This document shows, one piece after another, positions 3,465-33,800 of a stretch of 64,000 nucleotides of DNA. Location: IMG/VR virus record IMGVR_UViG_3300017917_001123, positions 124,001-188,000 of that record. One strand, written 5' to 3'. A program made the translations under genes and the position numbers. Under the pieces are notes generated by a model that was not told the origin of the DNA, ran no database searches, and saw only the letters and a list, made by a program, of their open reading frames with translations. How positions within the stretch are numbered: the first letter of the stretch is position 1; every line of letters begins with the position of its first letter.

Positions 3465-4331
3465 TTAGACGAAAAAATTTGCAGCGTCAAATACAAAAGG
3501 AACTTCAATTTCGGGCGGTGCGCCCTTTTCAAGCATCTCCGGTGTGCTTTGGAATTTCAATGGAGGCAACGCATTTCTGTCGTTCATTTCTCCGACATGC
3601 TTTTTAACTTTTTCAAAAATTTCTGCGTCACAGCCTCTCATGAATTCGCTGATAAATTCTGGGTTATCAGTTGTACCAGCAGACGATTCAATTTTATAAA
3701 CCGCTCGATTAACCAAATCTAAGGCTTTGGTTGAAATTTTGTCAAACGTTTGCTTAAATGCGTTGAGTTTTACATCTTCTTCAAGGTCTTGGTCACGAAG
3801 AATTGTCATCATCCGCTGTGTTTCAAATTCAGTGATCTGTGTTGTAGACTGTGTTCTGTAGTCAATTGGTTTAACATAGAGAACTAGATCAGGTCGAACT
3901 TCAACGCGGTCTTCCCAAGTAACTGTAGACTGAAGTCTATCAAGTATTTCACGAAGGTTAGCTTGGAAATCCATCGGCCCTTCCATAGTTTCGTGGTTAA
4001 CTTCTAATGTCAAATTCTCACCGTAGGTTGCCATTCTAATTGCTACAAGGATAACATCTAAGTCAATTTGCGGAGCTTCCCAAGCATCGATGATGTTGGG
4101 CATACAACTTTGAATAACATCAACAACACCTTGTCCATTGAGCAGAGCATCTGGAGTTTTAAGAATAATCTCATCTCTAGCAGTCATTGAATACACAGGA
4201 TATTCTCCGTTAATTGTGGGATTTAAACTGCCCTCGCGCCAGTATTTTCCGCCACTTGGTAAAGTGATGTAGACTTTAGGTTGTCTTAACATTGACAACA
4301 GAGGATTTGTTTTAGGTGTGTTTTCTGACAT
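3465..4331 (-). CDS. gp26: gp26-like baseplate hub / tail assembly chaperone, 288 aa
   Basis: LRQPKVYITLPSGG...MTARDEIILKTPDALLNG...DLDVILVAIRMATYGE matches the T4 gp26-like family pattern; adjacent to the tape measure gene; SD GGAG. Confidence 0.75.
   Translation of the reverse strand: MSENTPKTNPLLSMLRQPKVYITLPSGGKYWREGSLNPTINGEYPVYSMTARDEIILKTPDALLNGQGVVDVIQSCMPNIIDAWEAPQIDLDVILVAIRMATYGENLTLEVNHETMEGPMDFQANLREILDRLQSTVTWEDRVEVRPDLVLYVKPIDYRTQSTTQITEFETQRMMTILRDQDLEEDVKLNAFKQTFDKISTKALDLVNRAVYKIESSAGTTDNPEFISEFMRGCDAEIFEKVKKHVGEMNDRNALPPLKFQSTPEMLEKGAPPEIEVPFVFDAANFFV
3471..3477 (-). other. Candidate -1 programmed ribosomal frameshift slippery heptamer T TTT TTC
   Basis: Minus strand reads GCA AAT TTT TTC GTC TAA; the -1 frame (TTT TTT CGT CTA AGG ...) is open for 76 further codons into the gp51-like ORF. 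Confidence 0.7.
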
Positions 4332-11744: not shown

Positions 11745-12926
11745 ATGATGTCACAACTTCTGAACGAAAGATGGTCAGAAACCAAAGAAACCCTACTAGA
11801 GGGTCTATCAGGTAACCGTCGTAGTTCCATGGCAACTTGCTTGGAAAATACACGTAAGTACCTATCTGAAAGTGCTACTGCTGGTGCAACATCAGCTGGT
11901 AACATTGCAACACTTAACCGCGTGATTCTTCCAGTAATCCGTCGTGTTATGCCTACAGTTATTGCTAACGAAATCGTTGGCGTACAACCAATGACAGGTC
12001 CAGTTGGTCAAATCCATACTTTACGTGTCCGTTACGCTGACAACAGCAACGAAGTAACTGCAGGCGAAGAGGCACTAAGCCCATTCAAGATCGCTCAAGC
12101 ATATTCTGGTAACGACAATGCTTCTACACCACGTGCTGACACAACAGCCAAGTTAGAAGGTCAACCAGGTAAGCGCATGAGCATTCAAATCTTGAAGGCA
12201 CCAGTTGAAGCTAAGAGCCGCAAGCTATCAGCTCGCTGGACATTTGAGGCCGCTCAAGATGCACAAGCACAACAAGGTATCGATATCGAAGCAGAAATCA
12301 TGGCTGCTCTAGCACAAGAAATCACTGCTGAAATCGACCAAGAAATCCTAGCAAGCCTACGTGCTTTAGCTAGCGTCGAAGAAACATATGACCAGTCATT
12401 AGTTTCTGGTACAGCTACATTCGTTGGTGACGAACATGCCGCATTGGCAATTCAAATCAACCGTGTTGCTAACAAGATTGCACAACGCACACGTCGTGGT
12501 GCTGGTAACTGGGCTGTTGTTTCTGCGCAAGCATTGACAATTCTTCAGTCTGCTACAACATCAGCTTTCGCTCGTACTACAGAAGGTACTTTCGAAGCTC
12601 CAACAAACACTAAGTTCGTTGGTACACTAAACAACGCAATGCGTGTTTATGTTGACGCATACCTACCAGACACTGGTGCTGATGCTAACCAAGTTCTTAT
12701 TGGTTATAAGGGTCCAAGCGAAGCTGATGCTGCCGCTTTCTATTGCCCATATATTCCTCTAATGAGCTCTGGTGTTGTTCTTGATCCAGCAACATTCGAA
12801 CCAGTAGTTGGCTTCTTAACACGCTACGGCTATGTTGAGTTGACAAATACTGCTTCTTCTCTAGGTAACGCCGCTGACTATCTAGGCAAAGTATCTATTA
12901 CTTCTGCTAACGTTAGCTTCAAGTAA
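11745..12926 (+). CDS. gp23: Major capsid protein, 393 aa (start may be 11748)
   Basis: PVIRRVMPTVIANEIVGVQPMTGPVGQI, RKLSARWTFEAAQD, EAEIMAALAQEITAEIDQEI, FYCPYIPL, TRYG. Confidence 0.98.
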   Translation: MMSQLLNERWSETKETLLEGLSGNRRSSMATCLENTRKYLSESATAGATSAGNIATLNRVILPVIRRVMPTVIANEIVGVQPMTGPVGQIHTLRVRYADNSNEVTAGEEALSPFKIAQAYSGNDNASTPRADTTAKLEGQPGKRMSIQILKAPVEAKSRKLSARWTFEAAQDAQAQQGIDIEAEIMAALAQEITAEIDQEILASLRALASVEETYDQSLVSGTATFVGDEHAALAIQINRVANKIAQRTRRGAGNWAVVSAQALTILQSATTSAFARTTEGTFEAPTNTKFVGTLNNAMRVYVDAYLPDTGADANQVLIGYKGPSEADAAAFYCPYIPLMSSGVVLDPATFEPVVGFLTRYGYVELTNTASSLGNAADYLGKVSITSANVSFK

Positions 12927-16647: not shown

Positions 16648-19600
16648 ATGGCCGTAGGTCGAATTACAGGTCCGCTCTTAGCAAGCAATTTGTTAAGAGA
16701 CGGAGTAAATTTATCAGTAGAAACTGATCTCTTATACTTAGATGTTCAAACAGGTCGTATTGGTATCAAGACGTCTAGTCCGCAGTATGATTTAGATGTT
16801 AACGGTACAGCAAACATTGATGTATTGCGTGTATCAAATACCTCAACGTTAGGTTTACTAACAGTTACCAAATCCGTCACAAGTGGTACAATTGGATCAA
16901 CACTAGGTCCTATCAACATTGACCCAGCAAATAACGAAAAGATTTATTTAAAAGCCAATACAGAAGTTATTGGTAACTTACATGCCACTGGCGAAATCAC
17001 AGCCGACGGTAACATTCGACTAGGTGATACAACATCAACTGATACACTTAAAGTTGGTGCTGAGATTATTTCTAACCTAATTCCTCAAACACCAAACACT
17101 TACGATATAGGTTCACAAAGCCAAAATTGGCGTGCCGCTTATTTCCAACAATTATTCACAGGCAATCTACATCAGTTTGGCAACACAATTACAAACGTTC
17201 TTCCTCAGAACATTGATATTATTCCTCAAGGCGGAACATTAAACATCTACGGTAATGTTCGCATTTGGGAAGGAACACCTTTAGGTACTGCCCCTCAAAC
17301 TAACAACGTTTTATATGTAACAGAAAATGGCAGTGACACAAACGACGGTTCGGCAATGGACGCCTCTCGTGCTTGCCGTACAATCAGTGGTGCTGTTCGT
17401 AGTCCATTATACAAGCCAGGTACAAGTATTAAAGTTGCTCCTGGCCATTATCTAGAACAAAACCCAATTGAATTAAAACCTTACACATCTGTTATTGGTT
17501 CTGACCTACGTACAACATTTATTGAACCAATCAACAAGACACAAGACGTATTCCATGTTCGTTCTGGTTGCTACATTGCCCAGATGAATATCTTTAACGG
17601 TCGTTCTGGACGTTTCCCAGGAACTGGTTATCTAGCAGATACAAACCGCGGAGCCTACGCAGTTGCGTTCCCACCAAACGGCGACAACGGAGTTCCAGTA
17701 GACGTATTCCAATCTCCATATATTCAAAACTGTACAAACCAATCAGGTCCTTGGTTATATGACGGTACTATGTTTGTACCTAACCAAACAGTTCAAGTTC
17801 CAGAAGGTGTTGGTATCTCGACATACGAAGCTGGTACACAAGAAATTGAAGTAACATTATCTGAAGGTGAAATCTATGTTGGACAGAGCATTAACGGTGC
17901 TCCGCCAAATCAAGGATTCTTCAATGCTCGTACATTGTTATTATCAAACAAGCCGTTTATTCAAGAGCAAGTTGTTGCCTATGTTGACCAACAGTATGGC
18001 GGCCCATTCCAATACAACGCAGTCAAGTGCGCTCGCGACACTGGTCTTATCATTGACGGCCTAGGGTTAGATCTAGTTTACAACTCAACAAGCCAATCAG
18101 TATTCTCTGGTTTACAATATTGGAGCCAAACATCTTCACCGACACAGATTGCTGGTGAAGAAACTACAACAACAAACGCATTTAACTATATTAATAGTAT
18201 TGCTCAATTAGTTGTTCGTGCTCAAGCAGTTTCAACACCATACCAGAATACACTAACACAAGTTACTGCTCTTCCAGCCGGAGCTATTGGCGATGCTAAC
18301 AGAGTATCTTCGTTGTTTACAACTGCTACAAACATTATTGTTGAAGGCACATCTGGTATTAGCGACAAGATTATTTCAAACGGCGCAGTTACTTCTAACA
18401 CAAGTACACAGGCCGCTTACAATCTTCTACAGGCAAACAAAGAATTCTTAAAGGCAGAAGCCATTGCTTGGATTTCTGCTAACTCTCCGACCTTTACTTA
18501 CGACCAAGCAAAGTGTAAGAGAGATGTTGGCTATCTAGTTGACTGTGTATCGTTTGACTTACTACACGGTGGTAACCGTCAAGTAATTCAAGCAGGTACA
18601 TATTACTACGGTTACAGTTCTGTTAACAGCGCAATTCCGGGAGAACAGGCTCAGACAATTCTAGCATACAATTACATGAAGAATGTAATCTCTGCCGTTG
18701 TTCAAAGTCAGAAGCTAACACGCTTCTATCAATCTGAGATTCCTCAAGTACTTGATAATAACAACGCAGGGTCAGCTGCCGCCGCAACGACTATTACTGG
18801 AAATATTGATTTAATTACAAGATTAGTTCGAGTCGGTCCAGAAGGCGCACCAGCATTAGAGCCAATTGGTTTAACACGTTCAGTTGATACTGGTGTGTTA
18901 AATGCCTATGCTCTGTTAACTGCTAACATGGACTTTATTAAGGCAGAAGTTATTGCCTATGTAAACACATTACCTAACTTTGTTTACAACAAAGAGAAGT
19001 GCTACAGAGACGTTGGAATTATTATTGAAAACGTTTCCTTTGATGCGTTAAATGGTGGAAATGAAAAAGCACTTGAAGCAGGCTTGTCTTATTACAACGG
19101 TGTAACAAGTGTAATTCAAGGTCAAGAAACACAAACAGTTGGCGCAATCGAATATATTAAATTCTTAGCAAGAAAAGTTATTCGTAATCAAACTTGCCCA
19201 GACCTATTAAGCGGCCGCGGCGCAGAAAGCCAGCAAATTAACTATGTTTTAACTGGCGGTGGTATCGCTCAACCGGCATTAGATAAAGGCTTTGATCTTA
19301 TCACTGGTATCATTACTAACGGCCCATCTTTTGCTCCTACTTCTTATCCAGGATGCGCTGTCGATCCATACTTGATGAGTGCTGAAGTTCTATTACAAGC
19401 TAATAGAAGTTTCATCCAAGAAGAAATTGTTGAGTTTGTTAATAAGTCTTTCTTAACATTCCCATTCAACACATCTAAATGCCGCCGTGATACTGGTTTA
19501 ATTGTTGACGCAATCGCAATGGATATGATGTATCCCACTGCGTCAGACAGTCAATCAACATTCGCAGGTATCCAATACTGGAAGAACGGAAGCTATACTG

Positions 19601-22600
19601 GCGACATTGAAAAAGAATTAACAACAACAACAAATGCTATTAGCTATCTAAGTAGCCTAGCACAAAAATTAATTCTAAACGATATTTCTGGTCCACGTTA
19701 TCAGACAGCAGTTACACAAAATACAAGCCTTGCGTCTGCTACAGTTTCTGAAGCAGACATAATTGGAACAGATTTAGATCTAGTTATTTCAATTCTAAAT
19801 GATGGAACCGAAGGCATAACTGACAAAGTTATTCCAAACGGTCAACCTCTAACTACCCCTGGTGTAATTAACGCTTACGAAATTTTACAAGCTAACAAAG
19901 CATACATCCAAGCAGAAGTTGTTGCCTACGTTGAAGCAACCAAGACTCCTGGATTTACATACAGCCAAGTAAGTTGCTCGAGAGATGTCGGTTACTTAGT
20001 TGACGCAGTTTCCTTTGACTTATTACATGGCGGTAACCGTCAAGCAATTCAAAGTGGTGTTTACTACTATTCATTTGACGGCCTTGTTAGTGCTATTCCA
20101 GGTGAAACAACTCAAACTGTTTCAGCATACAAACACTTAAAATCAATTCTTGCTAACATCATTACAGGAACAACTGTAACAGAGCGTTACCAAAATGTTA
20201 TTAATCAGAACGTATCTTTAAGTGCTGGAGGAAGTACTCAGGTAACAACCGCACAAGGTTTAGTTGATACAATTATTGATATTATTTTAGTAGGTCCAAG
20301 TGCCGCTCCAGCCGCACAACCATTGAGCCTAACAGAAAGTTCTACAGCATTAACAGTAAATGCGGCAAAGATCATCTCAGCAAACAGAGACTTTATCAAA
20401 GCCGAAATTATTGCTTATATTAATAAGACTTTCCCAAGCTTCAGATACAACAGCGAAAAATGTGCTCGCGATACCGGCTTGTTAGTTGATGCTATAGCAC
20501 AAGATTTATTATTTGAAGGCAATACACAATCAGTATTCTCTGGTGTTCAGTATTGGAAACAAACTGGTTACACTGGTACTATCGCAAATGAATTAACAAC
20601 TACAACTAGCGCAATTAGCTATGTAAGCGACCTTGCTCAAAAAATTGTTAAGAATGTCACAAGCGGACCACGTTATCAGTCAGCAGTTACACAAAACACA
20701 GTTTTACCAGCCGCTACTACAATTCAATCATATAAGATTAGTAAAGAGTTTGAATTAATCTTAGAATTAATCAATGATGGATTACTAGGAGTTACTGATA
20801 AGATTGAACCTAACAGTTTAGTAGCAAGCGGCGATTCAAATGTCATTGCCGCATTTGATTTACTACAAGCTAATAAAGCATACATCCAAGCAGAAGCTGT
20901 GGCTTTTGTTGAATCAACTAAGACACCTGGCTTTACTTACGACCAAGCCAAGTGTTCTCGAGATGTTGGCTACATGATTGATAGCGTATGTATTGACTTA
21001 CTATACGGCGGTAACCGTCAAGCAATTCAAAGTGGTGTTTACTATTGGGATGCTTCAACTGGCGTTACCGCAATTCCGGGCGAAATTACTGAAACCCTTG
21101 ATGCTTACAACTATCTAAAGACTATTGTTGAAAAAGTAATCTTAGGTATACCAGCACCAAGAAGCCAAAGCAACAAGATTGTTCAAGTAACAAACTTGCC
21201 AACAGCGTCTGACACAGAAGTAACCTTATTAAGCAACAAAATTAATAAGATTACAAACATTATTCAAAACGGACCATCTGTTGTAACAGTTAAAGAACCA
21301 ATTAGCTTAGTTCGTACATCCGACGCAAACAAGAAACGTGCTTACGATTTGCTAATGGCAAACAGAGAGTTTATTGCTAGCGAAATTGTTTCTTACATCA
21401 ACGAAAAGTACAATGGAATTTCTTATTCTTACAACAAGGTTAAGTGTTTCCGTGATACTGGGTTGATTGTTGATAGTATTGTTACTGACTTAGGTTGGGG
21501 AACAAACGGATTTACACAAAGCAACTTTGCCGGTTTACAGTACTGGAACCAAAACGGTTATACTGGAGACATCCAACGAGAGCTAACAACCACAACTAAC
21601 GCAATCAACTATCTAAGCACACTTGCTCAGAAAATTGTTCAAAATGATTTAACAGGTACTCGTTATCAGTTTACACTAACTCAAAACATAAGTCTACCAG
21701 CCGCAACACCAATTGAAGCATCGGCTATTGCTTTAGACTTTAGCACCGTTACAAACATCTTGTTAAACGGAACAACTGGTGTAACAGATATTATTGTTTC
21801 AAATGGTATTACTGCTCTAAGTTCAGACGCACAACACGCTTACGATTTATTACAGGCAAACAAGGCATACATGCAGGCCGAAGTTATTGCTTGGGTCGAA
21901 GCAAACAAAGGCACTGGATTTGTTTATGATAGTACTAAGTGTTCAAGAGACACTGGCCTAATTGTTGATGCTGTGGTACAAGACTTATTGTTTGGCGGAA
22001 CAAGTCAAACAACATTTGCTGGTATTCAATATTGGAACCAAAATGGTTACGTAGGAACCATCGCAAGTGAGTTAACAACTACAACTAACGCAATTTCTTA
22101 TGTAAGCAGTCTGGCACAAAAAGTAATTCAGAACGATACACTAGGAACAAGATATCAGTCAACTGTAACACAAGTTACAAATCTTGATCCAGGTACCGTT
22201 ACAGAAGCGACTCGCGTTGCCAGCGACTTTACTGTAATTTTAGATATTTTACAAAATGGTACTGCTGGGGTAAGCGATAAGATTATTCCAAACGGTATCG
22301 ACGCAGACATTAATACTAATGTTCAAAATGCCTTTGCTGTTCTTCAAGCAAACAAGGCATACATTCAAACAGAAGCAGTAGCATTTGTTGAATCAACTAA
22401 GACACCTGGCTTTGTATATGATCAAGCTAAGTGCTATAGAGATGTTGGTTACATGATTGATAGCATCTGTATCGACTTGCTATATGGCGGAAATCGTCAA
22501 GCAATTCAAAGCGGGGTTTACTATTATGGTTACAACGGAAGTTCAAGTGCAATTGCTGGAGAACAAACAGAAACTATCGCCGCATACAATCATATCAAGG

Positions 22601-25600
22601 CAATCATAACCTCGATTGTTACTGGCGTAGAAATTACTAATCCTTATCAGCTAGCTGTTCCGCAGGTAAGAACACTATCTGCCGGTACAAGCGCAGAAGT
22701 AACAACTTCTCAAGGATTAATTGATGTTATTACAAATATCATTCAGAACGGCCCAACCGTTGCGGCAGCTCCTGCCCCATTAGGATTAACAAAGAGCTCA
22801 AACGCAAACGTTCAAAACGCGGCCGCAATGTTACTTGCTAACAAAGATTTTATTGTAGCAGAAACAATCGCTTATATTGATTCTACATACGCAAAAGGTT
22901 TTGATTACGATCAGGCTAAGTGCTATCGAGACATGGGTTATCTAATTGATAGTATCAGTTACGATATTCTATACGGCGGCAACAGACAAGCAGTCAACAG
23001 TGGTGTTTACTACTACGGATTTGATGCTTCAGCAAGTGCTGTAGCAAACGAGCAAGTACAAACCGCCGCGGCCTATAACAGATTAAAAGAAATTATTCCT
23101 TTAATCATTACTAACCAGCCAGTAGCACCGACAGACGGTAATGTAACAGAACAACAGTTCAACACATTTGGTTCAAATGAAGAAGTTAGCCAATTAACTT
23201 CTCAGATGATTCAGTTAATGGTTGACATTATCCAAGACGGCCCAAGTGCGGCGATAGCAAAAACTCCAATCGGTCTAACAGAGAATACTGATGCTAATAT
23301 CCAAAAAGCAATGGTACTATTACGTTTAAACAGAGAGTTTATCCAAAACGAAATCATTGCTTGGGTTGACGCAACATACAAGAAGGGCTACTTTAATTAC
23401 AGCCAAGAGAAGTGCTACAGAGATGTCGGCCTAATCGTTGATGCTCTATCTGGCGACCTATTAATTGGCGGAAACTTAAAGACAATCGAAGCAGGTGTTA
23501 CTTATTGGCTTGGCGGCGTTAACGCAGTTGCTAACGAAATACCTCAACAAAATGCTTCTTTAGATTATCTAAAGACCGTTGTTGCTAAGGTTGTATCTAA
23601 TCAAGAATTAGCTTCTATTAGCGGAGCACGTCAGATTATTAATCCTTACTTTGCTGGCGGACAATACACAACAGAAAACTTAAACAGATTAATTGACATT
23701 CTTAAGACAGTTATTTCTAAAGGTCCTGCTTTTGCTCCACAAGGGTATCAAGGAAGTGGTGCTTTCGCAACAAGTAACTCGTCGGTTGATTACATCCAAC
23801 CAGCAAGTACAGTTCTTGAGGTAACTGATTTAGGCGGATATCGTTACAGAGTTTATCTAAGCAAGCCTATCCTAGGCCCAGGAAATAACGCAACATTGTT
23901 CTTTGGACAAACATCAGTTTATCCTTTACTAGATAAGAATGTTCCAGATCGTTGGAATCAACGACGCATTGACCCATACGGTTCTGTAGGCGGTGCCCTA
24001 ATTGACGGCGCAGTTGTTTCTAAGCGTTCTCCAATTCAGTCGTTTGTTTTTGACGCATATACTCAACTTAACCAAGGCGGTATTGGAATTAAGATTACAA
24101 ACAGCGGTTACGCACAGCTAGTATCGGTGTTCACAATCTTCTGCGGAACATCTGTTATTGTAGAGAACGGCGGTATTTGTTCTATTACCAACTCTAACGC
24201 GAACTTTGGTGACTTCTGTCTAGTTGCTAAGGGTTACAGTAAGCGCGAGTTCTTCGGTGAAGTTTATAACCCACCAGTTCTACCTTACTATCCAAATGGA
24301 TTCTTCCCGCAGACACAGATTGTTGAAGTGTTCTGTCCAGACCCAGAAAACAGACCGCACATTGGTCAGATTATGGAAGTTGTTCCTCCTGAGGGATATA
24401 CTAACGCACAAGGTCTACCAGGATTCTTATCTGCGGCAATCAACACAAGCACATTAACAACTGGATCAATTAGCATAAGTGGAATTGATACAGAAGGTGT
24501 TGTTATTGGTCAAAACATTTATGTTCGCGACCAGTACGGTTCATACACTGATATTAACGGAACACGTTATGTTCCAGAAGGTACTATTGTAACAGATGTA
24601 TCATTTAAGACAATTACACTAAGCGAAAGTATCACATCGGGCGGTGGAGAACTTGGAAATCCAAACTACTTTACAATGTATGTTGCTGGTAATGCTTATT
24701 ACACAGTTCGTTCAAGCGAACTTGCTCCGGATCCAATTCCTCCTGGAACTTTCCGATTAGGCCCAAGCGCAACAGAACAAGGTAACGATCAAGGCGATGA
24801 AGAAATTCAAGCACTTCAATACCTAAACAATCTAGCAAATAAAGTTGTTAGCAATCAGCTAATTAGTGCGGCTCAAACAACATCAACTCAAGTAACTAAC
24901 TTGACATTAAGCGGTGGTGACCAAGCAACCATTAGAATGGGTGAATTGTTTACAACTCTACAAAGCATTATTACAAATGGTCTAGATGCGGCACCTGCTA
25001 TTAAGAAAGAAGGTGTTGTTCCGCCTGGAGCAGATAGCGCAAGTTCTTTACTAACTGCGAATACTCCGTTCTTACAAGAAGAAATCATAAAATATATTAA
25101 CAGTCAATACTTTGTATATGATCATGATCTATGCCGTAGAGACTTAGGTTACATTTTAGATGGCTTTGGTTGGGACGTTTTATTCCAATCTAACTACCAA
25201 GCTATTAAGTGCGGTAATGCTTATCTAAGAAATGTACCTGGAAGCAAGTATGTTTTAGAAAATGAAAAAGCACAAACAGTCGATGCTATTGATAGAATCG
25301 CTGACTTAACAAACGGTCTAAGTGGTATTAATACTGTTACTGGCGCTATTTCTGTTATTAACTTAGACGGTATCTACATCCAAAATATTATCAACGGCGC
25401 AGGCGCACCAGCATATAGTATGCCTAACCCGGCAGGCCTTGATAACGGCATAGCAAGTGCTAAGAGTTTAATTTTAGACAACTTAGCTTACATTAAAGAA
25501 GAAGTTATTGGATGGATCGATGCTACATATCCAACATTCACTTACGATCAAATTAAATGTAAGAGAGACATTGGTTTAGTATTAGACGGTGTAAACTGGG

Positions 25601-27423
25601 ATATCCTTTTAGGAACCAACTACCGTAGTATTAAATCCGGTCAAGCATACTTCCGTGGAAACGCAGAAGCATTATTAGCAAATGAAAAAACTCAGACAAT
25701 TGCCGCGTTTGGTTTTGTAAAAGATTACTTGTTAAATCTTTCAGTTGTTCAAGCAAGCACAACTGCTACACAAACTGTGACAAATGACTTTAATAATATC
25801 ATTGCTATTCTAAACGGAGGCATTGCGGCAAGCCCAACAGTAACATATACAATTCCGCCAGGCACAGTAACAGGCTTCTCAAGTGCAAGCCAGTTGTTAC
25901 AAGCAAACCGCGCATTTATTATGGCTGAGGTAGAAAATTACATTCATGTAACTTATCCAAGTCATGTATATGATCGAGCTAAGTGCGAAAGAGATGTTGG
26001 TTTAATTTTAGATGCTTTAATCTATGATTTAACTTACGGCGGAAACTCAATGACTGTTGATGCGGCTCTTCAATACTTTGATAACGCAAATAACAATGTT
26101 CGTGTAAATCCTAACGAAGTACCTGAAACAGTTGCTGGTATTAATTACATTAACACTATTTGCCAACGTATTATTCAAAACTTGGCTCCTGTAGTAAGCT
26201 ATCAAGTAGCTGTAACTCAAACATTCAATCCAAGTTGGCCACAAGGTTCTGTAGCTGGACCTACTGTTGCTGATCTTGTAAGCGATATCGCAAACATTGT
26301 TCAGAACGGTCCGTCTGCTACTCCGTTGATTACTGAGCCATCATATGCTTGGGCAAGTCCAAGTCAGATTCTGGCAAGAACAGAAATTGATGATTCTAAG
26401 GAACTGATTGCTACTGAAACTATTGCGTTCATTAATGATGAATATACAGTATTCAGTTACGATAAAGCAACATGCCGTCGCGATATGGATTATGTAATTC
26501 ATAGCATGATCTATGATTTAATTTACGGCGGAAATTGGCAGACAGTTGATGCTGGTTTAAATTATTGGAAAGGAGCTACTAGCTTAATTCCGGGTGAACA
26601 AGATCAAACAGTTGGCGCATTTACCTACATGCTTCAGTTAATGAAACGTGTTTCTCTAAATCAAGCACCAACACAGAGCTATCAGAACATTTACACACAA
26701 TTCTTTAATCCGTTATTGCTTGATGGACAAAATGCTCATGGTAAGTTAGAGGCGTTAACTGTTATTCTAAATAACATTATTCAAAACGGAACAGGCGTTG
26801 CTCCAGCAATTGAGTATCCTGGCACAACAGGATATAGTTCAACATTATTAAATGTTAAGAACATTATCGAAACACAAAAGACAAACTTGGTCAACCAGGT
26901 AATTACGTATATTGATAACAAGTATAACGGTTTTGAATATAACCAAGCGTTGTGTAAGCGTGACGTAGGGTTTGTAGTAGAAGCAATTGCCGCAGACTTA
27001 GTAAGTGGTGGAAACTACAACACAGTCTTATGTGGTCAGAGCTACTACGCAAGAGAAGGTACACACCACTATGTGACTATCGAAGATAACGTAGCAGATG
27101 CTACACTATTCCCAGATAAGGCACATATTAATTTCTATCGTCGTTCTTACATGTCTGCTTCTGGTTACTTGTTTGAATATGTAGGTGCTGGTTCTAACTA
27201 CGGTGCTCTACCTTATGTAGGACGATTTGATCCTAACCAAGAAAGAGAAACTGTACAGTTGAATAACGGTAAGGTATTCTTTACAAGTACTGACCAAAAC
27301 GGTGACTTCCGAATTGGTCCAGGATTGGTAATTAGCCAGGCAACTGGTGTGTTATCAGGACGTACATTTACGAAGTCATTGTTTGCTAACTTGACACCGT
27401 TCATCTTAGCAATTGAAGGATAA
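16648..27423 (+). CDS. Giant virion/appendage protein, 3591 aa: fibre-type N-terminus, split beta-helix, 17 helical C-x-R-D (phycobiliprotein-like) repeats, C-terminal fibre-type domain
   Basis: Uninterrupted ORF with strong SD; LYVTENGSDTNDG...IKVAPGHYLE beta-helix start; repeat motif F-x-Y-x3-K-C-x-R-D-x-G-x3-D-x4-D-x3-GGN. Confidence 0.9.
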   Translation: MAVGRITGPLLASNLLRDGVNLSVETDLLYLDVQTGRIGIKTSSPQYDLDVNGTANIDVLRVSNTSTLGLLTVTKSVTSGTIGSTLGPINIDPANNEKIYLKANTEVIGNLHATGEITADGNIRLGDTTSTDTLKVGAEIISNLIPQTPNTYDIGSQSQNWRAAYFQQLFTGNLHQFGNTITNVLPQNIDIIPQGGTLNIYGNVRIWEGTPLGTAPQTNNVLYVTENGSDTNDGSAMDASRACRTISGAVRSPLYKPGTSIKVAPGHYLEQNPIELKPYTSVIGSDLRTTFIEPINKTQDVFHVRSGCYIAQMNIFNGRSGRFPGTGYLADTNRGAYAVAFPPNGDNGVPVDVFQSPYIQNCTNQSGPWLYDGTMFVPNQTVQVPEGVGISTYEAGTQEIEVTLSEGEIYVGQSINGAPPNQGFFNARTLLLSNKPFIQEQVVAYVDQQYGGPFQYNAVKCARDTGLIIDGLGLDLVYNSTSQSVFSGLQYWSQTSSPTQIAGEETTTTNAFNYINSIAQLVVRAQAVSTPYQNTLTQVTALPAGAIGDANRVSSLFTTATNIIVEGTSGISDKIISNGAVTSNTSTQAAYNLLQANKEFLKAEAIAWISANSPTFTYDQAKCKRDVGYLVDCVSFDLLHGGNRQVIQAGTYYYGYSSVNSAIPGEQAQTILAYNYMKNVISAVVQSQKLTRFYQSEIPQVLDNNNAGSAAAATTITGNIDLITRLVRVGPEGAPALEPIGLTRSVDTGVLNAYALLTANMDFIKAEVIAYVNTLPNFVYNKEKCYRDVGIIIENVSFDALNGGNEKALEAGLSYYNGVTSVIQGQETQTVGAIEYIKFLARKVIRNQTCPDLLSGRGAESQQINYVLTGGGIAQPALDKGFDLITGIITNGPSFAPTSYPGCAVDPYLMSAEVLLQANRSFIQEEIVEFVNKSFLTFPFNTSKCRRDTGLIVDAIAMDMMYPTASDSQSTFAGIQYWKNGSYTGDIEKELTTTTNAISYLSSLAQKLILNDISGPRYQTAVTQNTSLASATVSEADIIGTDLDLVISILNDGTEGITDKVIPNGQPLTTPGVINAYEILQANKAYIQAEVVAYVEATKTPGFTYSQVSCSRDVGYLVDAVSFDLLHGGNRQAIQSGVYYYSFDGLVSAIPGETTQTVSAYKHLKSILANIITGTTVTERYQNVINQNVSLSAGGSTQVTTAQGLVDTIIDIILVGPSAAPAAQPLSLTESSTALTVNAAKIISANRDFIKAEIIAYINKTFPSFRYNSEKCARDTGLLVDAIAQDLLFEGNTQSVFSGVQYWKQTGYTGTIANELTTTTSAISYVSDLAQKIVKNVTSGPRYQSAVTQNTVLPAATTIQSYKISKEFELILELINDGLLGVTDKIEPNSLVASGDSNVIAAFDLLQANKAYIQAEAVAFVESTKTPGFTYDQAKCSRDVGYMIDSVCIDLLYGGNRQAIQSGVYYWDASTGVTAIPGEITETLDAYNYLKTIVEKVILGIPAPRSQSNKIVQVTNLPTASDTEVTLLSNKINKITNIIQNGPSVVTVKEPISLVRTSDANKKRAYDLLMANREFIASEIVSYINEKYNGISYSYNKVKCFRDTGLIVDSIVTDLGWGTNGFTQSNFAGLQYWNQNGYTGDIQRELTTTTNAINYLSTLAQKIVQNDLTGTRYQFTLTQNISLPAATPIEASAIALDFSTVTNILLNGTTGVTDIIVSNGITALSSDAQHAYDLLQANKAYMQAEVIAWVEANKGTGFVYDSTKCSRDTGLIVDAVVQDLLFGGTSQTTFAGIQYWNQNGYVGTIASELTTTTNAISYVSSLAQKVIQNDTLGTRYQSTVTQVTNLDPGTVTEATRVASDFTVILDILQNGTAGVSDKIIPNGIDADINTNVQNAFAVLQANKAYIQTEAVAFVESTKTPGFVYDQAKCYRDVGYMIDSICIDLLYGGNRQAIQSGVYYYGYNGSSSAIAGEQTETIAAYNHIKAIITSIVTGVEITNPYQLAVPQVRTLSAGTSAEVTTSQGLIDVITNIIQNGPTVAAAPAPLGLTKSSNANVQNAAAMLLANKDFIVAETIAYIDSTYAKGFDYDQAKCYRDMGYLIDSISYDILYGGNRQAVNSGVYYYGFDASASAVANEQVQTAAAYNRLKEIIPLIITNQPVAPTDGNVTEQQFNTFGSNEEVSQLTSQMIQLMVDIIQDGPSAAIAKTPIGLTENTDANIQKAMVLLRLNREFIQNEIIAWVDATYKKGYFNYSQEKCYRDVGLIVDALSGDLLIGGNLKTIEAGVTYWLGGVNAVANEIPQQNASLDYLKTVVAKVVSNQELASISGARQIINPYFAGGQYTTENLNRLIDILKTVISKGPAFAPQGYQGSGAFATSNSSVDYIQPASTVLEVTDLGGYRYRVYLSKPILGPGNNATLFFGQTSVYPLLDKNVPDRWNQRRIDPYGSVGGALIDGAVVSKRSPIQSFVFDAYTQLNQGGIGIKITNSGYAQLVSVFTIFCGTSVIVENGGICSITNSNANFGDFCLVAKGYSKREFFGEVYNPPVLPYYPNGFFPQTQIVEVFCPDPENRPHIGQIMEVVPPEGYTNAQGLPGFLSAAINTSTLTTGSISISGIDTEGVVIGQNIYVRDQYGSYTDINGTRYVPEGTIVTDVSFKTITLSESITSGGGELGNPNYFTMYVAGNAYYTVRSSELAPDPIPPGTFRLGPSATEQGNDQGDEEIQALQYLNNLANKVVSNQLISAAQTTSTQVTNLTLSGGDQATIRMGELFTTLQSIITNGLDAAPAIKKEGVVPPGADSASSLLTANTPFLQEEIIKYINSQYFVYDHDLCRRDLGYILDGFGWDVLFQSNYQAIKCGNAYLRNVPGSKYVLENEKAQTVDAIDRIADLTNGLSGINTVTGAISVINLDGIYIQNIINGAGAPAYSMPNPAGLDNGIASAKSLILDNLAYIKEEVIGWIDATYPTFTYDQIKCKRDIGLVLDGVNWDILLGTNYRSIKSGQAYFRGNAEALLANEKTQTIAAFGFVKDYLLNLSVVQASTTATQTVTNDFNNIIAILNGGIAASPTVTYTIPPGTVTGFSSASQLLQANRAFIMAEVENYIHVTYPSHVYDRAKCERDVGLILDALIYDLTYGGNSMTVDAALQYFDNANNNVRVNPNEVPETVAGINYINTICQRIIQNLAPVVSYQVAVTQTFNPSWPQGSVAGPTVADLVSDIANIVQNGPSATPLITEPSYAWASPSQILARTEIDDSKELIATETIAFINDEYTVFSYDKATCRRDMDYVIHSMIYDLIYGGNWQTVDAGLNYWKGATSLIPGEQDQTVGAFTYMLQLMKRVSLNQAPTQSYQNIYTQFFNPLLLDGQNAHGKLEALTVILNNIIQNGTGVAPAIEYPGTTGYSSTLLNVKNIIETQKTNLVNQVITYIDNKYNGFEYNQALCKRDVGFVVEAIAADLVSGGNYNTVLCGQSYYAREGTHHYVTIEDNVADATLFPDKAHINFYRRSYMSASGYLFEYVGAGSNYGALPYVGRFDPNQERETVQLNNGKVFFTSTDQNGDFRIGPGLVISQATGVLSGRTFTKSLFANLTPFILAIEG
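17915..27060 (+). repeat. Protein-level tandem repeat array: 12 + 5 copies of a ~142-165-aa helical unit with invariant C-x-R-D
   Basis: Cys codons at 18028, 18514, 19000, 19480, 19975, 20461, 20953, 21445, 21940, 22432, 22921, 23413, then 25132, 25558, 25984, 26473, 26953. Confidence 0.93.
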
Positions 27424-27837: not shown

Positions 27838-30800
27838 ATGCCAGGATTACTAAGCGGCCGTGTAAAAGTATCAGCAGGTACTAATTACACTATTAACAAT
27901 TATATTAGTCTAAACCAAGCGCAAGCAGGCTTAGGCGTTACACCTACATCTGGTACAGGATACACACTGGTTATTGGTCCAGACGGTGTAGCAACCTTTA
28001 CAAATACTTTAGGTAACATTGGATTTGAAAACGGTGTTATAACCTCGCAAAGTACAACTGGTGACTTAACATTAAATCCAAGTGGTACTGGTACTATTAC
28101 ACTTAATGGTCCTGTTAATATTCCTGATGGTATTATTGGTTCTGGTTTTAAGAAAGAAGTTGTTGTTGCGTCAACTAGTGATGTTCTTGTTAACACATCA
28201 ACAAGTTTGATTGTTGTTGATGGTTTCAAATTAAATTATTTAGATCGTGTTTTATTAAAAGCACAAGCAAATCCTGCGCAAAACGGTATCTATTATGTAA
28301 GTACAGCATCGTTAGTTAACGATGTATTCACTGCTTCGGCATACAGCACTTCGTCTAACTGGGACGGTACTGTAATTGCGTTTGATAATCCGACTCCATT
28401 TATGGCACAGTTGCTTGATAAAGTAACTGCCGGTACAACATTCTTTGTCTATGACTTAGACAACGTTGCTTATAACGTAACGCTATCATCAGAATTTACG
28501 CAAAGCAACGGAGCCTATACTGCCACCACAGTAATTGCTTCCCCTACATCGGTTGTTAGTACAATTAGTCAAGCAATTTTTATTGCTACTAGCGCAACAA
28601 ACGCAGTATTGACACGTACTACAGACGCTGACAGTACAAGAAAATTAAATCACGTAGCTGTTCCTGTCCTGTACGGAACTAGCGGCGGCCGTTTATTCTT
28701 TACTAATTTTACTTCGTTTGGAATAGTTGATGTAGATCCAGTTAACTGGTACGAAATTGTTGACTCAGTATCTGGACAAAATGTTGCTAACAAAATTTTA
28801 GATGCTTCGTCAATTGGTATAAACACTCCAGGCGTCGGTAGATTTACATATCTAGACGCAGTTACTCAATTAGCAGTTTCAGCATCTACTGATTCAACCG
28901 CAACTGACAATGGTGCTGTCACTGTAGCCGGCGGCGTTGGAATTACAAAGAACTTATGGGTCGGCGGAGCAACAAACATTGCTGGCAGCTTAAATGTTTT
29001 AAGTCAAGCAAATCTAAGTCCAACAGGAGCAACAGTCTTTATTCAACCAAGCGGTGCTGGTTCTGTTGTAATTAATCCAGCAACAAAAGGTACAATGGAC
29101 AATGTTGACATTGGAAACGTAATTCCTGCCAACGGTACCTTTAATATTTTAAATGCGACAACACAACTTCGTGTAACAACAAGTACAAATTCTACAAGTA
29201 CAACAACCGGTGCTCTTGTTGTTGATGGCGGTGTCGGTATTGCCGGCGATTTAGTACTAGGCGGACAGTTAATCTTTAGTGGTGCGGCTGACGAATTTAT
29301 TGTAAACAATTTCCGTGCTCTAGGACAAGTTCTGTTTACAACAAGTACTAATTCAACTTCAACAACCACAGGCGGCTTAGTTGTATCTGGCGGTGTTGGC
29401 ATTGCTCAAGACTTAGTATTAGGCGGTAGTTTAATATTTGACGGCGACGCCGGAGAAATTCGTGTACGTCAATTAAAAGTTACTAGCACTCTAAGTTCAA
29501 CTTCTACTACAACCGGTGCTATTGTTGTAACAGGTGGCCAAGGTATTGGTGAGAACTTAAACGTCGGTGGCGATGTTACCATTGGCGGTAATTTGATCTT
29601 TACTGGTGAATCGCCTGATCTACGTGCTCAACAGTTGCGTGTAAGCGGAACAGCAACTTCTACAAGCACAACAACTGGTGCTTTACAGGTTGTAGGCGGT
29701 GTAGGTATTGGTCAAGATCTATGGCTAGGCGGAAACTTAAACTTTGCTAGTGCTCAAGGACAAATTAATGCCTTCCAAGTCCGAGTAACTGGAACAGAAA
29801 CTTCTACAAGTACGCAAACAGGCGCACTTGTTGTTGACGGTGGTGTAGGTATTGGCAAAGATGTTGTAATCGGCGGAAACTTAGATTTAGGCGGTCAATT
29901 AACATTTAACAAATCATTTACAGCAACCTTTGTTGCCCTACACATAACAAGTACAGCAAGCAATGTAAGTGACTTTGAAGATAACGCAGTTTATGTCGAA
30001 GGCGGCCTATCGCTTAAGAAAGATCTAAGTGTTTACGGAAATACTGTTGTTAGCGGTAACTTAACAGTATTAGGAACACAGACTTTTGTTGACAGTACTC
30101 AAACATATATTATTGACCCTGTATTGGACATTGGTACAGGAATCGGTAATACAGCTTTAACAACCAACGACGGTTTAGATCGAGGAATTTTATTACATTA
30201 TAATACAGGTGCGTCAGAAGCAACAAACAATCACGCATTCCTTGGTAGAGATGCTTCTACAGGTGACTTGGTTTATAAGTTTAACGTATATCCTGGCCCA
30301 GGTGAAGACTTTGCTCCGGCGTTTGCTGGCACAGGAACATTTGGTACAGCAAGATTTGGAACCCAGCGACTAGTTGGCGGAGTTGCTTCAATTAGCACCA
30401 ACACAGGCGATCTTCAAGTACTTGGTGGTATAGGTGTAACTAAGACTTCTTATTTTGCTGATCGTGTAACTCTGGCAAGCACTTTAGCAAATTCAACACA
30501 AACTGCCAACCATGCGTTAGTGGTCCCAACAGGCGGCATTGGTGTAGCAGGCGATTCTTACTTTGGTGGTATTGTACGTTTTGGAAACGGAACAGCAACA
30601 ACAAGCCCAACAACCGGCGCAGTATTGTTTAACGGTGGCCTTGGAGTGGGCGGTGGTGCTCAGATTTCTGGTCCTGTCAAGATTTTAAACGGAACAGCCG
30701 CAACAAGTACAACAACTGGCGCTCTACAAGTTGTTGGTGGCGTAGGTATTCAAGGCGATCTGTATGTTAGAAACGTCTATACATTAGATGGCGAAAACAT

Positions 30801-33800
30801 TGAGCGTTTTAATGGCGGAACAATTACTGCTCCGTTGTTAGTTGACAATACCTCAAACGCATTTAGTACAACAACTGGTGCTGTCGTAGTAACAGGTGGT
30901 CAAGGCATTGGTAGAGATCTATGGGTCGGCGGAACAGGTTTCATGGGAGACTTGTTTGTTAACGGCGCAAGAGTATTAACTACAGCAACTCCAACCGGAT
31001 TTAACGGTGGTACAATTATCTATCCGTTACAGATTGGTTATACTACTTCAACACTAAACACAACAGGTCTAACTGTTAACTCAGACATTAACGCTGTAAG
31101 CACTGACACAGGTGCTATTGTAACAATAGGCGGTATTGGTTTAGGTAAAGACTTGTGGATTGGCGGAACAATTTATCGTAACAACGATGTTACTAAACCT
31201 ACTTGGGGCAACGACGGTATTGCTGTAAACTTAGGAAGTGCTACATTTACAGACAATCAAGGATCTGGTAATTTTACAAATACACAAATGGTCTATGTTG
31301 GTCAACCAACATTTAGAGGACAGTTTGGTATTAACTACGATCGTGCCCAAACAATCTTTATTGAAGGTGCTCCGAAAGAAGGACAAAACACAACGATTGC
31401 TGACTCTTACGCAATTTGGGTCAATGATGGTAGAGTTCATATTGCTTCTTCAGCAACATCAGCAACAAACTATCTAAACAACGCACTGAGTGTTGATGGT
31501 GGTATTGGTGTTAAGGGCGGTGTTCAAATCACTGGTGACATTAAAGCCCAAGCAGTCTTTGATAACGGTAATCGTGTAGTTAGTTTTGTTGACCTTCAAG
31601 CAGGCAACGACGGAATTTTAGTTGCTCAAAGCCCAGCAGGCGGCCCAACAGCAACAATTTTTGTAAGCAACGCAGGTGTTGTTGAGGCAAATGCCGGAAC
31701 TGGTATTAACTTAGATCAGAGCCGCGGCACAATTACAATTACAAACATAGGTGTTACAGATTTAACTCCGACACAAGGTATTGGAATCTCAACAAGTACT
31801 GGTTCCGTTTCAATCTTTAACCTAGGTGTTACAAGTTTAACAGCTGGCACAGATACTGCGGTTTCAAGCACAACAAGTAATGTTGTAATTTGGAATACAT
31901 CGACTCTAGAAACAGTAACAGGTCGTGGCGGTTCAACACCTAACCCGATTGAAATTACAAACACAACAAGCAACGCATTTACAGTTGCTGGTACAGCAAA
32001 CTTTAACAATGTAACAGTTGGCGGTACATTAAGTGCTGGTAGTTCAACATTCTTTGGAAGTACAGGTTCTTTCATTGACTTAACGGTTTCTGGAAGCACA
32101 TTACTAAATGGTAATGTTACTATCGCTGGTACAGCAACTTATGTAAACAGCCAACAATTAACTGTAGTTGACCCAGTTATTGATATCGGAACTAATGTTA
32201 ATAACTCTCCGTTATTAGCTAATGACGGTTATGACCGCGGTATGTTAATCCACTACAATAGTGGAGCTGACATTACAGGAGATGCTCACGCATTCTTAGG
32301 TCGTGTAAACAGTAGCGGCAAACTAACATATCGTACAAACATTTGGCCAGGCGGCATAACTGATGTTCCAAATCCTTTTGGTTCAACAGGCACACTAGGA
32401 TCAGCGTTATTTGCTGGACTAGAATTACAAGGCGGCCTAGCATCAAGTGGTCAAGGAACTGGCGACTTACAAGTTACCGGCGGAATCTACGCAGGCGGAA
32501 ATTCTTACTTAGACGGTAAACTTCGTTTAGCAGATACACAAAACGCTATTTCAACACTAACCGGCGCACTAACAGTTGCTGGTGGTATTGGTGTTGGTAA
32601 GAACGTTTATGTTGACGGAGACGTTATTGTTCGTGGCTACGTTTTAACAACAGCAACAGCGTATAACGGCGGCGAAGTTTATAATCCAGTTGTTATTACA
32701 AACGGAACACCGGCAACAAACACACTAACAGGTGCGTTAATTGTACACGACGGTGGCGCAGGTATTGGTGGCGATGTTTGGGTAGGCGGAAGTGTAAATG
32801 CTTCAGCATTCTTTATTGATGGTCGTCCAGTAACAACCGACATTCACTTAGTAACTGGCCCCGGTTTAATTGGTGATGTTACAACAGCTACAAACGGTGT
32901 TACAATTACTATGACCAACACAGGTGTATTAACACTTGAAGGCGGCCCTGGTATTAACATTTGGAACACAGGAACAAGCGGAGTTACTACTGTAACTAAC
33001 GTCGGTGTTGTAACGTTAGACACAAGTGGCCCTGGATTACGTGCTACAACAAGCACAGGTTCTGTAACATTAATTAACTTAGGTGTTACAAGTGCTATTG
33101 CTGGAGCAGGTATTGGTGTAAGTCAAAGCACTGGCTCAGTTATTATTAACAACTTAGGCGTTTACAGCATTGGTATTATCGGCGATGGCTTAACAGCAAC
33201 AACATCAACTGGTTCTGTATTCTTAATTAACTCAGGTGTTACAAGTTTAACAGCTGGAACAGATACAGCGATTACCCAAACTACTGGCGCTATCGAAATT
33301 TGGAATACCTCAACATTACAGACTGTTACAAATCGTGGTAACGAAACAACAAATCAACTTTATCTAAACAACACTACACAGGCTAACAATACATTTAGTG
33401 GCGCACTACAAGTATTAGGCGGTGTTGGTATTGGTAAGAACCTGTATGTTGCTGGTAAGATTGTTGGTCAAGGCGGATACGAAGGATTAAATCCACCGGC
33501 TATCTTTGTAAACACAAGCTCTGTAACTGTTTATGATTCTGGTACAGTTCGTCAAGTTGACGTTGTAATTGCTAACAATACAACAACGGTGTTTAACAAT
33601 ACTGGCATTAACGTTAAAACAAACGTCGAAGCAACATCGACTGGAACTGGAGCAATTACAGTACTAGGCGGTATCGGTGTAAGCGGCACAGTTTATGGTG
33701 CGGCATTTAACGGTCCAAACGATACTGTAAGTATTACAAGTGGAACAACTGTCGGAGCAAGCCTAACAGCGACAGGTAAGATTTACGCTATTGGTGGTTA

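Follow-up and report, generated by a model that had tools for sequence, protein, structure and literature searches.

Introduction

Phycobiliproteins (Pfam PF00502) comprise the alpha and beta subunits of phycocyanin, phycoerythrin and allophycocyanin, and the ApcE bilin domain. Their alpha-beta dimers are joined by the N-terminal X-Y helical hairpin and assemble into (alpha-beta)3 rings, and the bilin site carries the triad Cys84-x-Arg86-Asp87 on helix E. Other globins of related shape, such as the RsbR N-terminal domain, the globin-coupled sensors and pXO2-61, are bilin-free sensors; they lack the C-x-R-D triad and are not tandem arrays. Giant tail-fibre and virion structural proteins are found in T4-like cyanophages (S-PM2p091, S-RSM4 SRSM4_214 and DSL-LC03 WJZ47903; PHROGs 4527, 5342 and 17885), and tandem arrays of alternating or two-subtype domains are known to change length by unequal crossing-over. 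However, literature searches, including reviews, gave no description of phycobiliprotein-like repeats in phage fibres, and we are aware of no repeat protein whose domain order follows a nesting rule.

Here we analyzed a 64,000-nucleotide stretch (the window; positions 124,001 to 188,000 of IMG/VR record IMGVR_UViG_3300017917_001123) of a Rak2-like 331-kb phage. A first-pass annotation made from the sequence alone had described an array of C-x-R-D repeats with subtypes in the order A-B-C-A-B-A-B-A-A-B-B-C, and had inferred obligate A/B pairing reminiscent of alpha/beta phycobiliprotein heterodimers, possibly with different chromophores or spectra, recent duplication of A-B units, and an array that expands and contracts. 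We found that the array is real and that A and B units appear to lock together in pairs, side by side or one pair inside another, so that their order reads like balanced brackets.

Results

The Repeat Array and Its Subtypes

The repeats are carried by a single ORF of 3591 aa, whose parts are as follows.

16648..27423 (+), giant ORF; tail-fibre or baseplate-type virion protein that carries the repeats
16648..17892 (+), N-terminal nonrepeat domain (aa 1-415), without a Pfam hit
17893..18864 (+), units 1 (A) and 2 (B), an adjacent A-B module
18865..19344 (+), unit 3 (C), unpaired connector between modules
19345..20325 (+), units 4 (A) and 5 (B), an adjacent module
20326..21309 (+), units 6 (A) and 7 (B), the adjacent module that was modelled
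21310..21804 (+), unit 8 (A), opening half of the outer pair
21805..22785 (+), units 9 (A) and 10 (B), inner module nested inside the 8/11 pair
22786..23277 (+), unit 11 (B), closing half of the outer pair
23278..23769 (+), unit 12 (C), connector that ends block 1
23770..24996 (+), central nonrepeat domain, with a half unit at its end (aa 2705-2788, about 24760-25011) that matches positions 89-160 of the unit HMM
24997..27309 (+), block 2, units 13-17, of five further types (d, e, f, g and h)
27130..27420 (+), conserved C-terminal fibre domain
20911..20934 (+), first copy of an exact 24-nt tract, encoding E-S-T-K-T-P-G-F in the helices just before the Cys helix of unit 7
22390..22413 (+), second copy of the 24-nt tract, at the same place in unit 10

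The C-x-R-D motif occurs at aa 461, 623, 785, 945, 1110, 1272, 1436, 1600, 1765, 1929, 2092 and 2256, with a period of 160-165 aa, and after a gap of 573 aa it recurs at 2829, 2971, 3113, 3276 and 3436. The motifs and the order of units 1-12 in the first-pass annotation were correct, and its observation was thus confirmed, although its span of 17915-23600 slightly clips block 1, which runs 17893-23769. Alignment and clustering of the 17 units had been proposed as the way to check the subtypes, and a phylogeny without A and B classes would have counted against them. Pairwise identity was 37-50% within A (units 1, 4, 6, 8 and 9), 38-57% within B (units 2, 5, 7, 10 and 11) and 20-39% between A and B. 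In an IQ-TREE tree including orthologues, A was a clade (support 91/99), C (units 3 and 12) was a clade (96/85*) and each block 2 type had its own clade across orthologues, while B was an unresolved grade. Within the window alone C was weak, since units 3 and 12 were 35% identical, no more than either is to B. The A and B classes are real.

The 24-nt tract was exact at 20911 and 22390, and none was expected by chance (0 of 100 shuffles). It lies inside the best DNA repeat of the region, which was only 84% identical over 196 nt between units 7 and 10. Tandem Repeats Finder found only trivial repeats and no DNA-level array. Same-class units shared only 51-61% of bases, and identical residues used the same codon in 50-60% of cases, against 47% expected from codon usage. 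Recent, near-identical copies are thus lacking in the array, and the recent duplication inferred from the tract is not supported.

Relationship to Phage Fibre Proteins

The whole protein matched PHROG tail-fibre, short-tail-fibre and virion-structural families with E values of 1e-171 to 1e-41. The pieces at aa 1-415, 2375-2783 and 3495-3591 matched positions 57-188, 657-745 and 907-1001 of PHROG 17885 (tail fibre protein, a profile of ~1000 positions) at E 2e-20 to 2.5e-22, the last value belonging to the C-terminal piece. The conserved nonrepeat segments of this family (PHROGs 17885, 5342 and 13163) are therefore present. The gene also lies in the virion structural module: the major head protein gene is at 11745-12926, with giant baseplate-wedge-like and tail-fibre-like ORFs downstream, although presence of the protein in virions was not examined.

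Megablast against phage records found no near relative, while tblastn found homologous units with C-x-R-D in 186 cyanophage records, at 28% identity or less. Foldseek against BFVD only recovered homologous cyanophage fibre proteins, with poor superpositions. The cyanophage proteins share the conserved N-terminal, central and C-terminal fibre pieces, but the cultured ones (S-PM2p091, SRSM4_214 and DSL-LC03) have only 3-10 weak units, and classification gave no clear A/B calls there, with no separate A class and no bracket-like array, so that the bracket rule was not tested on them. The phage of the window is a Rak2/GAP32-like huge phage, not a T4-like cyanophage; its capsid protein is 70% identical to those of Rak2/GAP32-like phages of proteobacteria.

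Relationship to Phycobiliproteins

The unit length of about 162 aa equals that of the phycocyanin alpha chains matched (162 aa). The whole fold of the models was phycobiliprotein-like, and bilin-free sensor globins scored lower than phycobiliproteins, although Foldseek found no significant match in the PDB or AFDB. In contrast, the family profile left the sequence-level assignment undecided. The whole protein scored 37 bits against PF00502, above the cut-off of 22.2, but no single stretch passed; taken singly, 5 of 17 units matched, with a best E of 0.0024, and none passed Pfam on its own. The B profile matched phycocyanin alpha (6jpr_A) at E 8e-4, whereas the A profile matched nothing. Because only B resembles phycocyanin alpha by sequence, and the structural hits mix alpha, beta and ApcE, a mapping of A and B onto alpha and beta was rejected.

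The bilin-site triad was invariant in all 17 units and was present in 1921 of 1944 family units, and it aligned with KC-x-RD-x-GY of phycocyanin alpha, on the helix that aligns with helix E and Cys84. Among the rare replacements of the Cys, 17 of 23 were bulky aromatics, as if filling a pocket. Nevertheless, the 331-kb genome, which is 93% complete, has no bilin synthesis or lyase genes; no bilin reductase, haem oxygenase, CpeT, CpeS, psbA/D or hli was found. There is no evidence of any chromophore, whose covalent binding was not assayed here, and the different chromophores or spectra suggested for A and B are not supported.

The Order of Units Follows a Bracket Rule

Comparison of repeat number and order in related phages had also been named in advance as a check. 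A three-class classifier miscalled block-2-type units as B, and eight classes were used instead. With A as an opening and B as a closing bracket, 107 of 121 proteins and 39 of 52 distinct architectures were balanced, and all 30 distinct words with equal counts of A and B, from 120 homologues, were balanced. A null that keeps the first and last letters and the neighbour counts gave a mean P of 0.51, about 15 expected, and a product of 1e-9; considering that the architectures are related by descent, these probabilities are upper bounds on significance. Of the 13 architectures that were not balanced, some appear truncated at an end and others are distant proteins in which block-2-type units may have been called B, explanations that we did not check. 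C units lay outside pairs, at nesting depth 0, in 65 of 65 occurrences. The rule is therefore nesting rather than simple alternation, and the window reads () C () () (()) C.

Block 1 of the orthologues had 8, 10, 12 or 14 units, which supports an array that expands and contracts, in two-unit steps. Indels of 326-327 aa separated proteins that were 75-95% identical. Three pairs of close homologues (labelled here P0053/P0093, 94.7% identical; P0059/P0094, 90.5%; and P0028/P0080, 83.9%) each differed by exactly 327 aa, the inner A-B pair, with breakpoints just before the Cys helix. This pair (units 9 and 10 of the window) is absent from 8-unit orthologues, whose units A06 and B07 fell with window units 8 (clade 95/89*) and 11 (clade 96/92*), respectively. 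Compared with the 10-unit homologue P0027, the window had 326 extra aa running from mid unit 5 to mid unit 7, an indel in register between like units.

Predicted Pairing of A and B Units

Structural modelling of A-B pairs had been put forward beforehand, and the lack of a predicted interface would have told against pairing. The A-B model had a pTM of 0.90 and contained one phycobiliprotein-like domain built from both units. The A-A-B-B model had a pLDDT of 89 but a pTM of only 0.62. Its phycobiliprotein matches spanned residues 84-691 with only about 90-107 aligned, so the core of unit 8 and the tail helix of unit 11 lie in one globin-sized domain, and other matches spanned 253-541, which is the core of unit 9 plus the tail of unit 10. 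Model coordinates and predicted errors were not examined and contacts were not measured directly, and the helix exchange and the contact between units 8 and 11 are deduced from these residue ranges. Units 8 and 11 given as separate chains scored ipSAE 0.49, 0.49 and 0.53, against 0.00 for the best control, with at least 85% of contacts agreeing between runs and a partner pLDDT of at least 75. This rates only as weak support, and it was obtained with our own alignments, which the calibration of the test did not cover.

The top A-B couplings were pseudo-twofold (A63-B63, A141-B69 and A66-B141), as in a pseudo-symmetric pair. At 25 column pairs trained on independent A-B pairs, the summed mutual information in 138 AABB quartets was 8.95 for outer A with outer B and 7.96 for the inner pair, against 5.55 and 5.73 for crossed pairings, and the difference was never reversed in 400 bootstraps. 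An inner pair inherited as a block could raise outer-outer and inner-inner covariation without any contact, and the comparison with random columns (z 4.3 against 1.1 and 2.6) controls for this only in part. In addition, AlphaFold and the covariation analysis draw on the same alignments and are not independent. Whether A and B form a dimer of the alpha-beta kind was left undecided by these data: a pair is supported, but the alignment ranges point to exchange of the C-terminal helix instead of the N-terminal X-Y hairpin, and ring formation was not modelled.

Discussion

The interpretation in the first-pass annotation was partly right, in that classes, pairing and changes in array length are supported, whereas alternation, recent duplication and differing chromophores are not. 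We consider it more likely than not that each unit of about 163 aa is a diverged phycobiliprotein-type globin domain, consisting of two helices, the helix carrying C-x-R-D, a short helix, a strand, a long helix, a 23-residue loop and a tail helix. In this view, A and B fold together into one rigid two-domain module by exchanging tail helices: the tail of B would complete the domain of A and, by pseudo-symmetry, the tail of A would complete the domain of B. Because the start and end of such a module would lie in the same domain, a whole module could sit between the two halves of another, which would explain the bracket-like order, with C units as unpaired connectors between closed modules. The array would form the variable shaft of a fibre or baseplate protein, and its length would change by loss or gain of whole modules, through recombination either in register between like units or at the conserved stretch just before the Cys. 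The analysis itself demonstrated the classes, the bracket rule, the two-unit indels, the likeness of fold and the covariation, whereas the helix exchange, the nested contacts in three dimensions and the role as a shaft are inferences from them. The helices before the Cys follow the type of the preceding unit and not of their own core, which this model does not fully explain.

Other scenarios were considered. Plain alternation by tandem duplication of A-B units, with A-A-B-B as a recent accident and no structural rule beyond neighbour contacts, agrees with the A-B-A-B stretches, the in-register indel relative to P0027 and the tract shared by units 7 and 10. However, A-A-B-B is conserved in the 10- and 12-unit orthologues and occurs 138 times in the family, nested words such as AABAABABBB and AAABBB are common and always balanced, the units are old, with synonymous sites near saturation, and tandem duplication of A-B cannot produce A-A-B-B, so this reading is already contradicted and very unlikely. 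It is also unlikely that the order is a mere by-product of two-unit deletions between the conserved stretches before the Cys, in which case A and B need not touch each other in any special way. The breakpoints of the three inner-pair indels do lie there, and the DNA is the best-conserved part of the unit (a 49-nt family at 65-84% identity), but recombination at that motif between an A and a B would usually shift the array by an odd number of units and give unbalanced arrays, while no architecture with equal counts breaks the rule, block 1 in the orthologue group always has 8, 10, 12 or 14 units, C is never inside a pair, the A-B model is a rigid intertwined module, and covariation is specific to the nested partners. 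Pairing between chains of a dimeric or trimeric fibre is doubtful as well. Phage fibres are usually multimers, phycobiliproteins form rings, and units 8 and 11 dock as separate chains; nevertheless, pairing between chains would not by itself require balanced, nested order within one chain, nor C outside pairs, and the single-chain A-B model is already closed and rigid, although no multimer model was run.

Compared with phycobiliproteins, the units of the window are fused in one virion-type protein, the exchanged arm appears to be the C-terminal helix, and pairs can be nested. Compared with two-subtype tandem arrays, indels of whole two-unit blocks between close relatives are shared, but the order follows a nesting rule and the partners can be far apart in sequence. 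These results place the predicted phycobiliprotein fold, with its bilin-site triad intact, in a fibre protein of a huge phage without pigment genes, which raises the question of what the triad does there. They describe a repeat protein whose order obeys a nesting rule, apparently because two-unit modules can be inserted inside one another, and thus give a simple and testable rule for how very long modular fibres grow and shrink without misfolding, as well as a way to predict partner domains from sequence order alone.

It is possible, though unlikely, that the units still bind a bilin or another ligand at the nearly invariant Cys with Arg and Asp, as in phycobiliproteins, with different pigments or spectra for A and B. 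The conserved triad and its alignment with that of phycocyanin alpha, the phycobiliprotein-like fold and the mostly aromatic replacements of the Cys speak for it. The absence of bilin genes from this genome speaks against it, as does the lack of a sequence match between the A profile and phycobiliproteins, and the kinship of the capsid protein leaves a cyanobacterial host unproven. If it were true, the ligand would be a bilin taken from the host or made with phage enzymes in the cyanophage relatives, some phage fibres would be pigmented, and the cyanophage genes cpeT, pebS and pcyA, whose roles the reviews call unresolved, would have a virion substrate, for which these units are a concrete candidate. 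In phage S-RSM4, a homologous fibre gene lies about 1 kb downstream of cpeT.

Repeat Units and Their Classes

All of the units lie inside a single open reading frame, in which the motif C-x-R-D occurs 17 times. The features are as follows.
16648-27423, + strand: open reading frame of 3591 aa carrying the 17 C-x-R-D motifs
aa 461 to 2256 of this frame: Cys positions of 12 copies, with a period of 160-165 aa, which make up the first block (aa 416-2374)
aa 2829 to 3436, after a gap of 573 aa: Cys positions of 5 more copies
24760-25011 (aa 2705-2788): a half unit, long helix plus tail helix only
20911 and 22390: the two exact copies of a 24-nt tract

Units were defined as running from 45 aa before each Cys to 46 aa before the next, and they were aligned on this basis. 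The identity was 37-50% within type A (units 1, 4, 6, 8, and 9) and 38-57% within type B (units 2, 5, 7, 10, and 11), while it was only 20-39% between A and B. The first-pass annotation had staked its reading on the appearance of A and B classes in a phylogeny of the repeats, and such a tree was built by maximum likelihood with orthologues included. In this tree, A was a clade (support 91/99), C (units 3 and 12) was a clade (96/85*) that was sister to two types of the second block, and B was an unresolved grade. The order A-B-C-A-B-A-B-A-A-B-B-C described in the first-pass annotation is therefore real, and the 24-nt tract is exact at both of its positions, so that the observation was confirmed. 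The half unit sits just before the second block, after the central nonrepeat domain, and it could complete a unit across the inserted domain.

Considering that near-identical DNA tracts had been taken as a sign of recent duplication, the age of the copies was investigated. Tandem Repeats Finder detected no array in the DNA. The best DNA repeat was 84% identical over 196 nt, between units 7 and 10, whereas units of the same class shared only 51-61% of their bases overall. Identical residues used the same codon 50-60% of the time, against 47% expected from the codon usage of the reading frame. The stretches of 83-85% identity coincided with the best-conserved peptide segments, namely the helices before the Cys and the Cys helix itself. 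The copies are old, recent duplication is not supported, and the 24-nt identity is an isolated patch, at most a short conversion tract.

Similarity of the Units to Phycobiliproteins

The Pfam family PF00502 (phycobilisome protein) scored 37 bits for the whole protein, above its cut-off of 22.2, but only as a sum of weak stretches. Taken singly, 5 of the 17 units matched, with a best E value of 0.0024. A profile of the units matched phycocyanin alpha chains exactly at helix E, where the C, R, and D aligned with Cys84, Arg86, and Asp87. A profile made from B units only did the same at E 8e-4 over helices B and E, while a profile made from A units only found nothing. In 120 homologous giant proteins, 1921 of 1944 units kept C-x-R-D, and the rare replacements of the Cys were mostly F, W, or Y (17 of 23). 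In the homologue P0080, which has the 8-unit form, the B unit at the junction left by the inner-pair deletion described below (around aa 1441-1447) has W-K-E-D in place of C-x-R-D.

Modeling of an A-B pair had been proposed beforehand as a test of whether the two types share an interface. An AlphaFold2 model of units 6-7 (alignment of 144 rows) had a pLDDT of 94.2 and a pTM of 0.90, although Foldseek itself found nothing significant. In the matches of this model to phycobiliproteins, one phycobiliprotein chain aligned to model residues 1 to about 316 with only 116-146 residues aligned. So, one globin-like domain is built from unit A (its two leading helices, the Cys helix, and the long helix) plus the last helix of unit B. 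From this we infer an exchange of tail helices within a closed two-domain module. Moreover, covariation in 468 adjacent A-B pairs gave a pseudo-twofold pattern (A63-B63, A141-B69, and A66/64-B141), in which the tail helix of each unit couples to the end of the other unit's Cys helix.

Order of A, B, and C Units in Homologous Proteins

Comparison of repeat number and order among related phages had likewise been named in advance as a check, and every unit of the 120 homologues, out of more than 1000, was classified with class HMMs. We found that the resulting orders behave like balanced brackets, with A as "(" and B as ")". The examples below illustrate this.
This protein: () C () () (()) C
8-unit orthologues: ABCABABC
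10-unit orthologues: ABCABAABBC
Another 12-unit form: ABCABAABBABC
14-unit forms: AABAABABBBCABC
More distant proteins: AAABBBCAAABBBC and ABAABABBAABBAB

Of 52 distinct architectures, 39 were balanced (107 of 121 proteins), and all 30 distinct A/B words with equal counts were balanced. Random order would give about 5 balanced among the 39 equal-count architectures. A strict null, applied to the 30 distinct words and keeping the first and last letters and all neighbor counts, gave a mean P of 0.51 and about 15 expected. These architectures share ancestry, so the probabilities overstate their independence. The 13 exceptions all had unequal counts; we attribute them to truncated proteins, or to distant ones where units of second-block type may have been called B, although neither attribution was checked. 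In addition, C units lay outside every pair in 65 of 65 cases. Some arrays, such as those of the homologues P0017 and P0060 (order AAB-ABB), carried an extra insertion of about 80 aa inside a pair, at nesting depth 1 (13 cases, with a Cys-to-Cys spacing of 242 instead of 162), and others had short spacings of 77-91 aa, both of unidentified nature.

Evidence for Nested Pairing

To examine whether the nesting is physical, we took 25 column pairs trained only on A-B pairs outside A-A-B-B contexts and applied them to 138 A-A-B-B quartets. The summed mutual information was 8.95 for the outer A with the outer B and 7.96 for the inner pair, in contrast to 5.55 and 5.73 for the two crossed pairings. 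None of 400 bootstraps reversed the order, and against random columns the corresponding z-scores were 4.3, 6.3, 1.1, and 2.6. When units 8 and 11 were given as separate chains in a complex prediction, they scored ipSAE 0.49, 0.49, and 0.53, against 0.00 for the best control. This is rated as weak support by the method's own scale; its runs agreed in at least 85% of contacts, and the pLDDT of the partner was at least 75.

The evolution of the array was also considered. Units A06 and B07 of the 8-unit proteins are orthologues of units 8 and 11 (clades 95/89* and 96/92*), and units 9 and 10 therefore sit inside a pair whose halves are adjacent in other phages. Three pairs of close homologues, P0053/P0093 (94.7% identical), P0059/P0094 (90.5%), and P0028/P0080 (83.9%), each differed by exactly 327 aa, the inner A-B pair, with breakpoints just before the Cys helix. 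The protein studied here differed from the 10-unit homologue P0027 (74.7% identical) by a 326-aa in-register indel running from mid unit 5 to mid unit 7. Therefore, the array changes in two-unit steps in two ways, tandem and nested. One detail is not explained: the two helices before each Cys follow the type of the preceding unit and not of their own core, at 175 of 207 A-to-A junctions and 212 of 214 B-to-B junctions. This fits the recombination breakpoints, and it means that the unit of inheritance runs from one Cys helix to the next.

Taken together, the interpretation in the first-pass annotation was supported in part. The pairing of A with B and the expansion and contraction of the array, both proposed there, are supported, in a more interesting form than proposed, namely nested pairing of intertwined phycobiliprotein-like units. 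The order of the units, the indels, and the covariation were observed in the sequences, whereas the exchange of tail helices is our inference. The main weakness is that the three-dimensional claims rest on predicted models whose coordinates were not inspected, and on alignments that also feed the covariation analysis. As for the further suggestion of different chromophores or spectra in A and B, there is no evidence for chromophores or for spectral differences.

Genomic Context

The protein is encoded within positions 124001-188000 of a virus record of 331,570 bp that is 93% complete, from a phage of unidentified host. The genome has no bilin reductase, haem oxygenase, CpeT, CpeS, psbA/D, or hli. 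The major head protein (11745-12926) is 70% identical to those of Rak2/GAP32/CBB-like huge phages, which are myoviruses of proteobacteria, and of Vibrio phage 2.275.O. The phage therefore belongs to that group of huge myoviruses, yet it shares fiber repeats with T4-like cyanophages. A second gene of the same genome, outside the window (G000:C1:32670-34094, where G000 is this phage's own genome; open frame of 2809 aa), carries three units of the same C-x-R-D, phycobiliprotein-like type (E 1e-40 to 1e-51). A syntenic homologue lies on an assembly of 357,895 bp, GCA_902725345.1.

Among cultured phages, the repeat family was found only in cyanophages (186 records at 28% identity or less), and the fiber proteins there have just 3-10 weak units without an A class. 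In Synechococcus phage S-RSM4 (NC_013085.1, record 162121-177047), the giant "short tail fiber" gene SRSM4_214 (4482 aa, 6 C-x-R-D motifs) lies about 1 kb downstream of cpeT (SRSM4_216) on the same strand, separated from it only by a tRNA cluster and an HNH gene. This is a possible link between a phage bilin-lyase homologue and the phycobiliprotein-like fiber.

The nonrepeat N-terminal, central, and C-terminal pieces of the protein match consecutive parts of one tail-fiber family profile of about 1000 positions (PHROG 17885, positions 57-188, 657-745, and 907-1001). Both repeat blocks therefore look like insertions into a fiber or baseplate scaffold. Two more giant open reading frames follow directly on the + strand, and their repeat content was not examined.
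27838-34728, + strand: 2296 aa, matching a "structural protein" family
34801-48114, + strand: 4437 aa, matching baseplate-wedge PHROGs at E 6.5e-177
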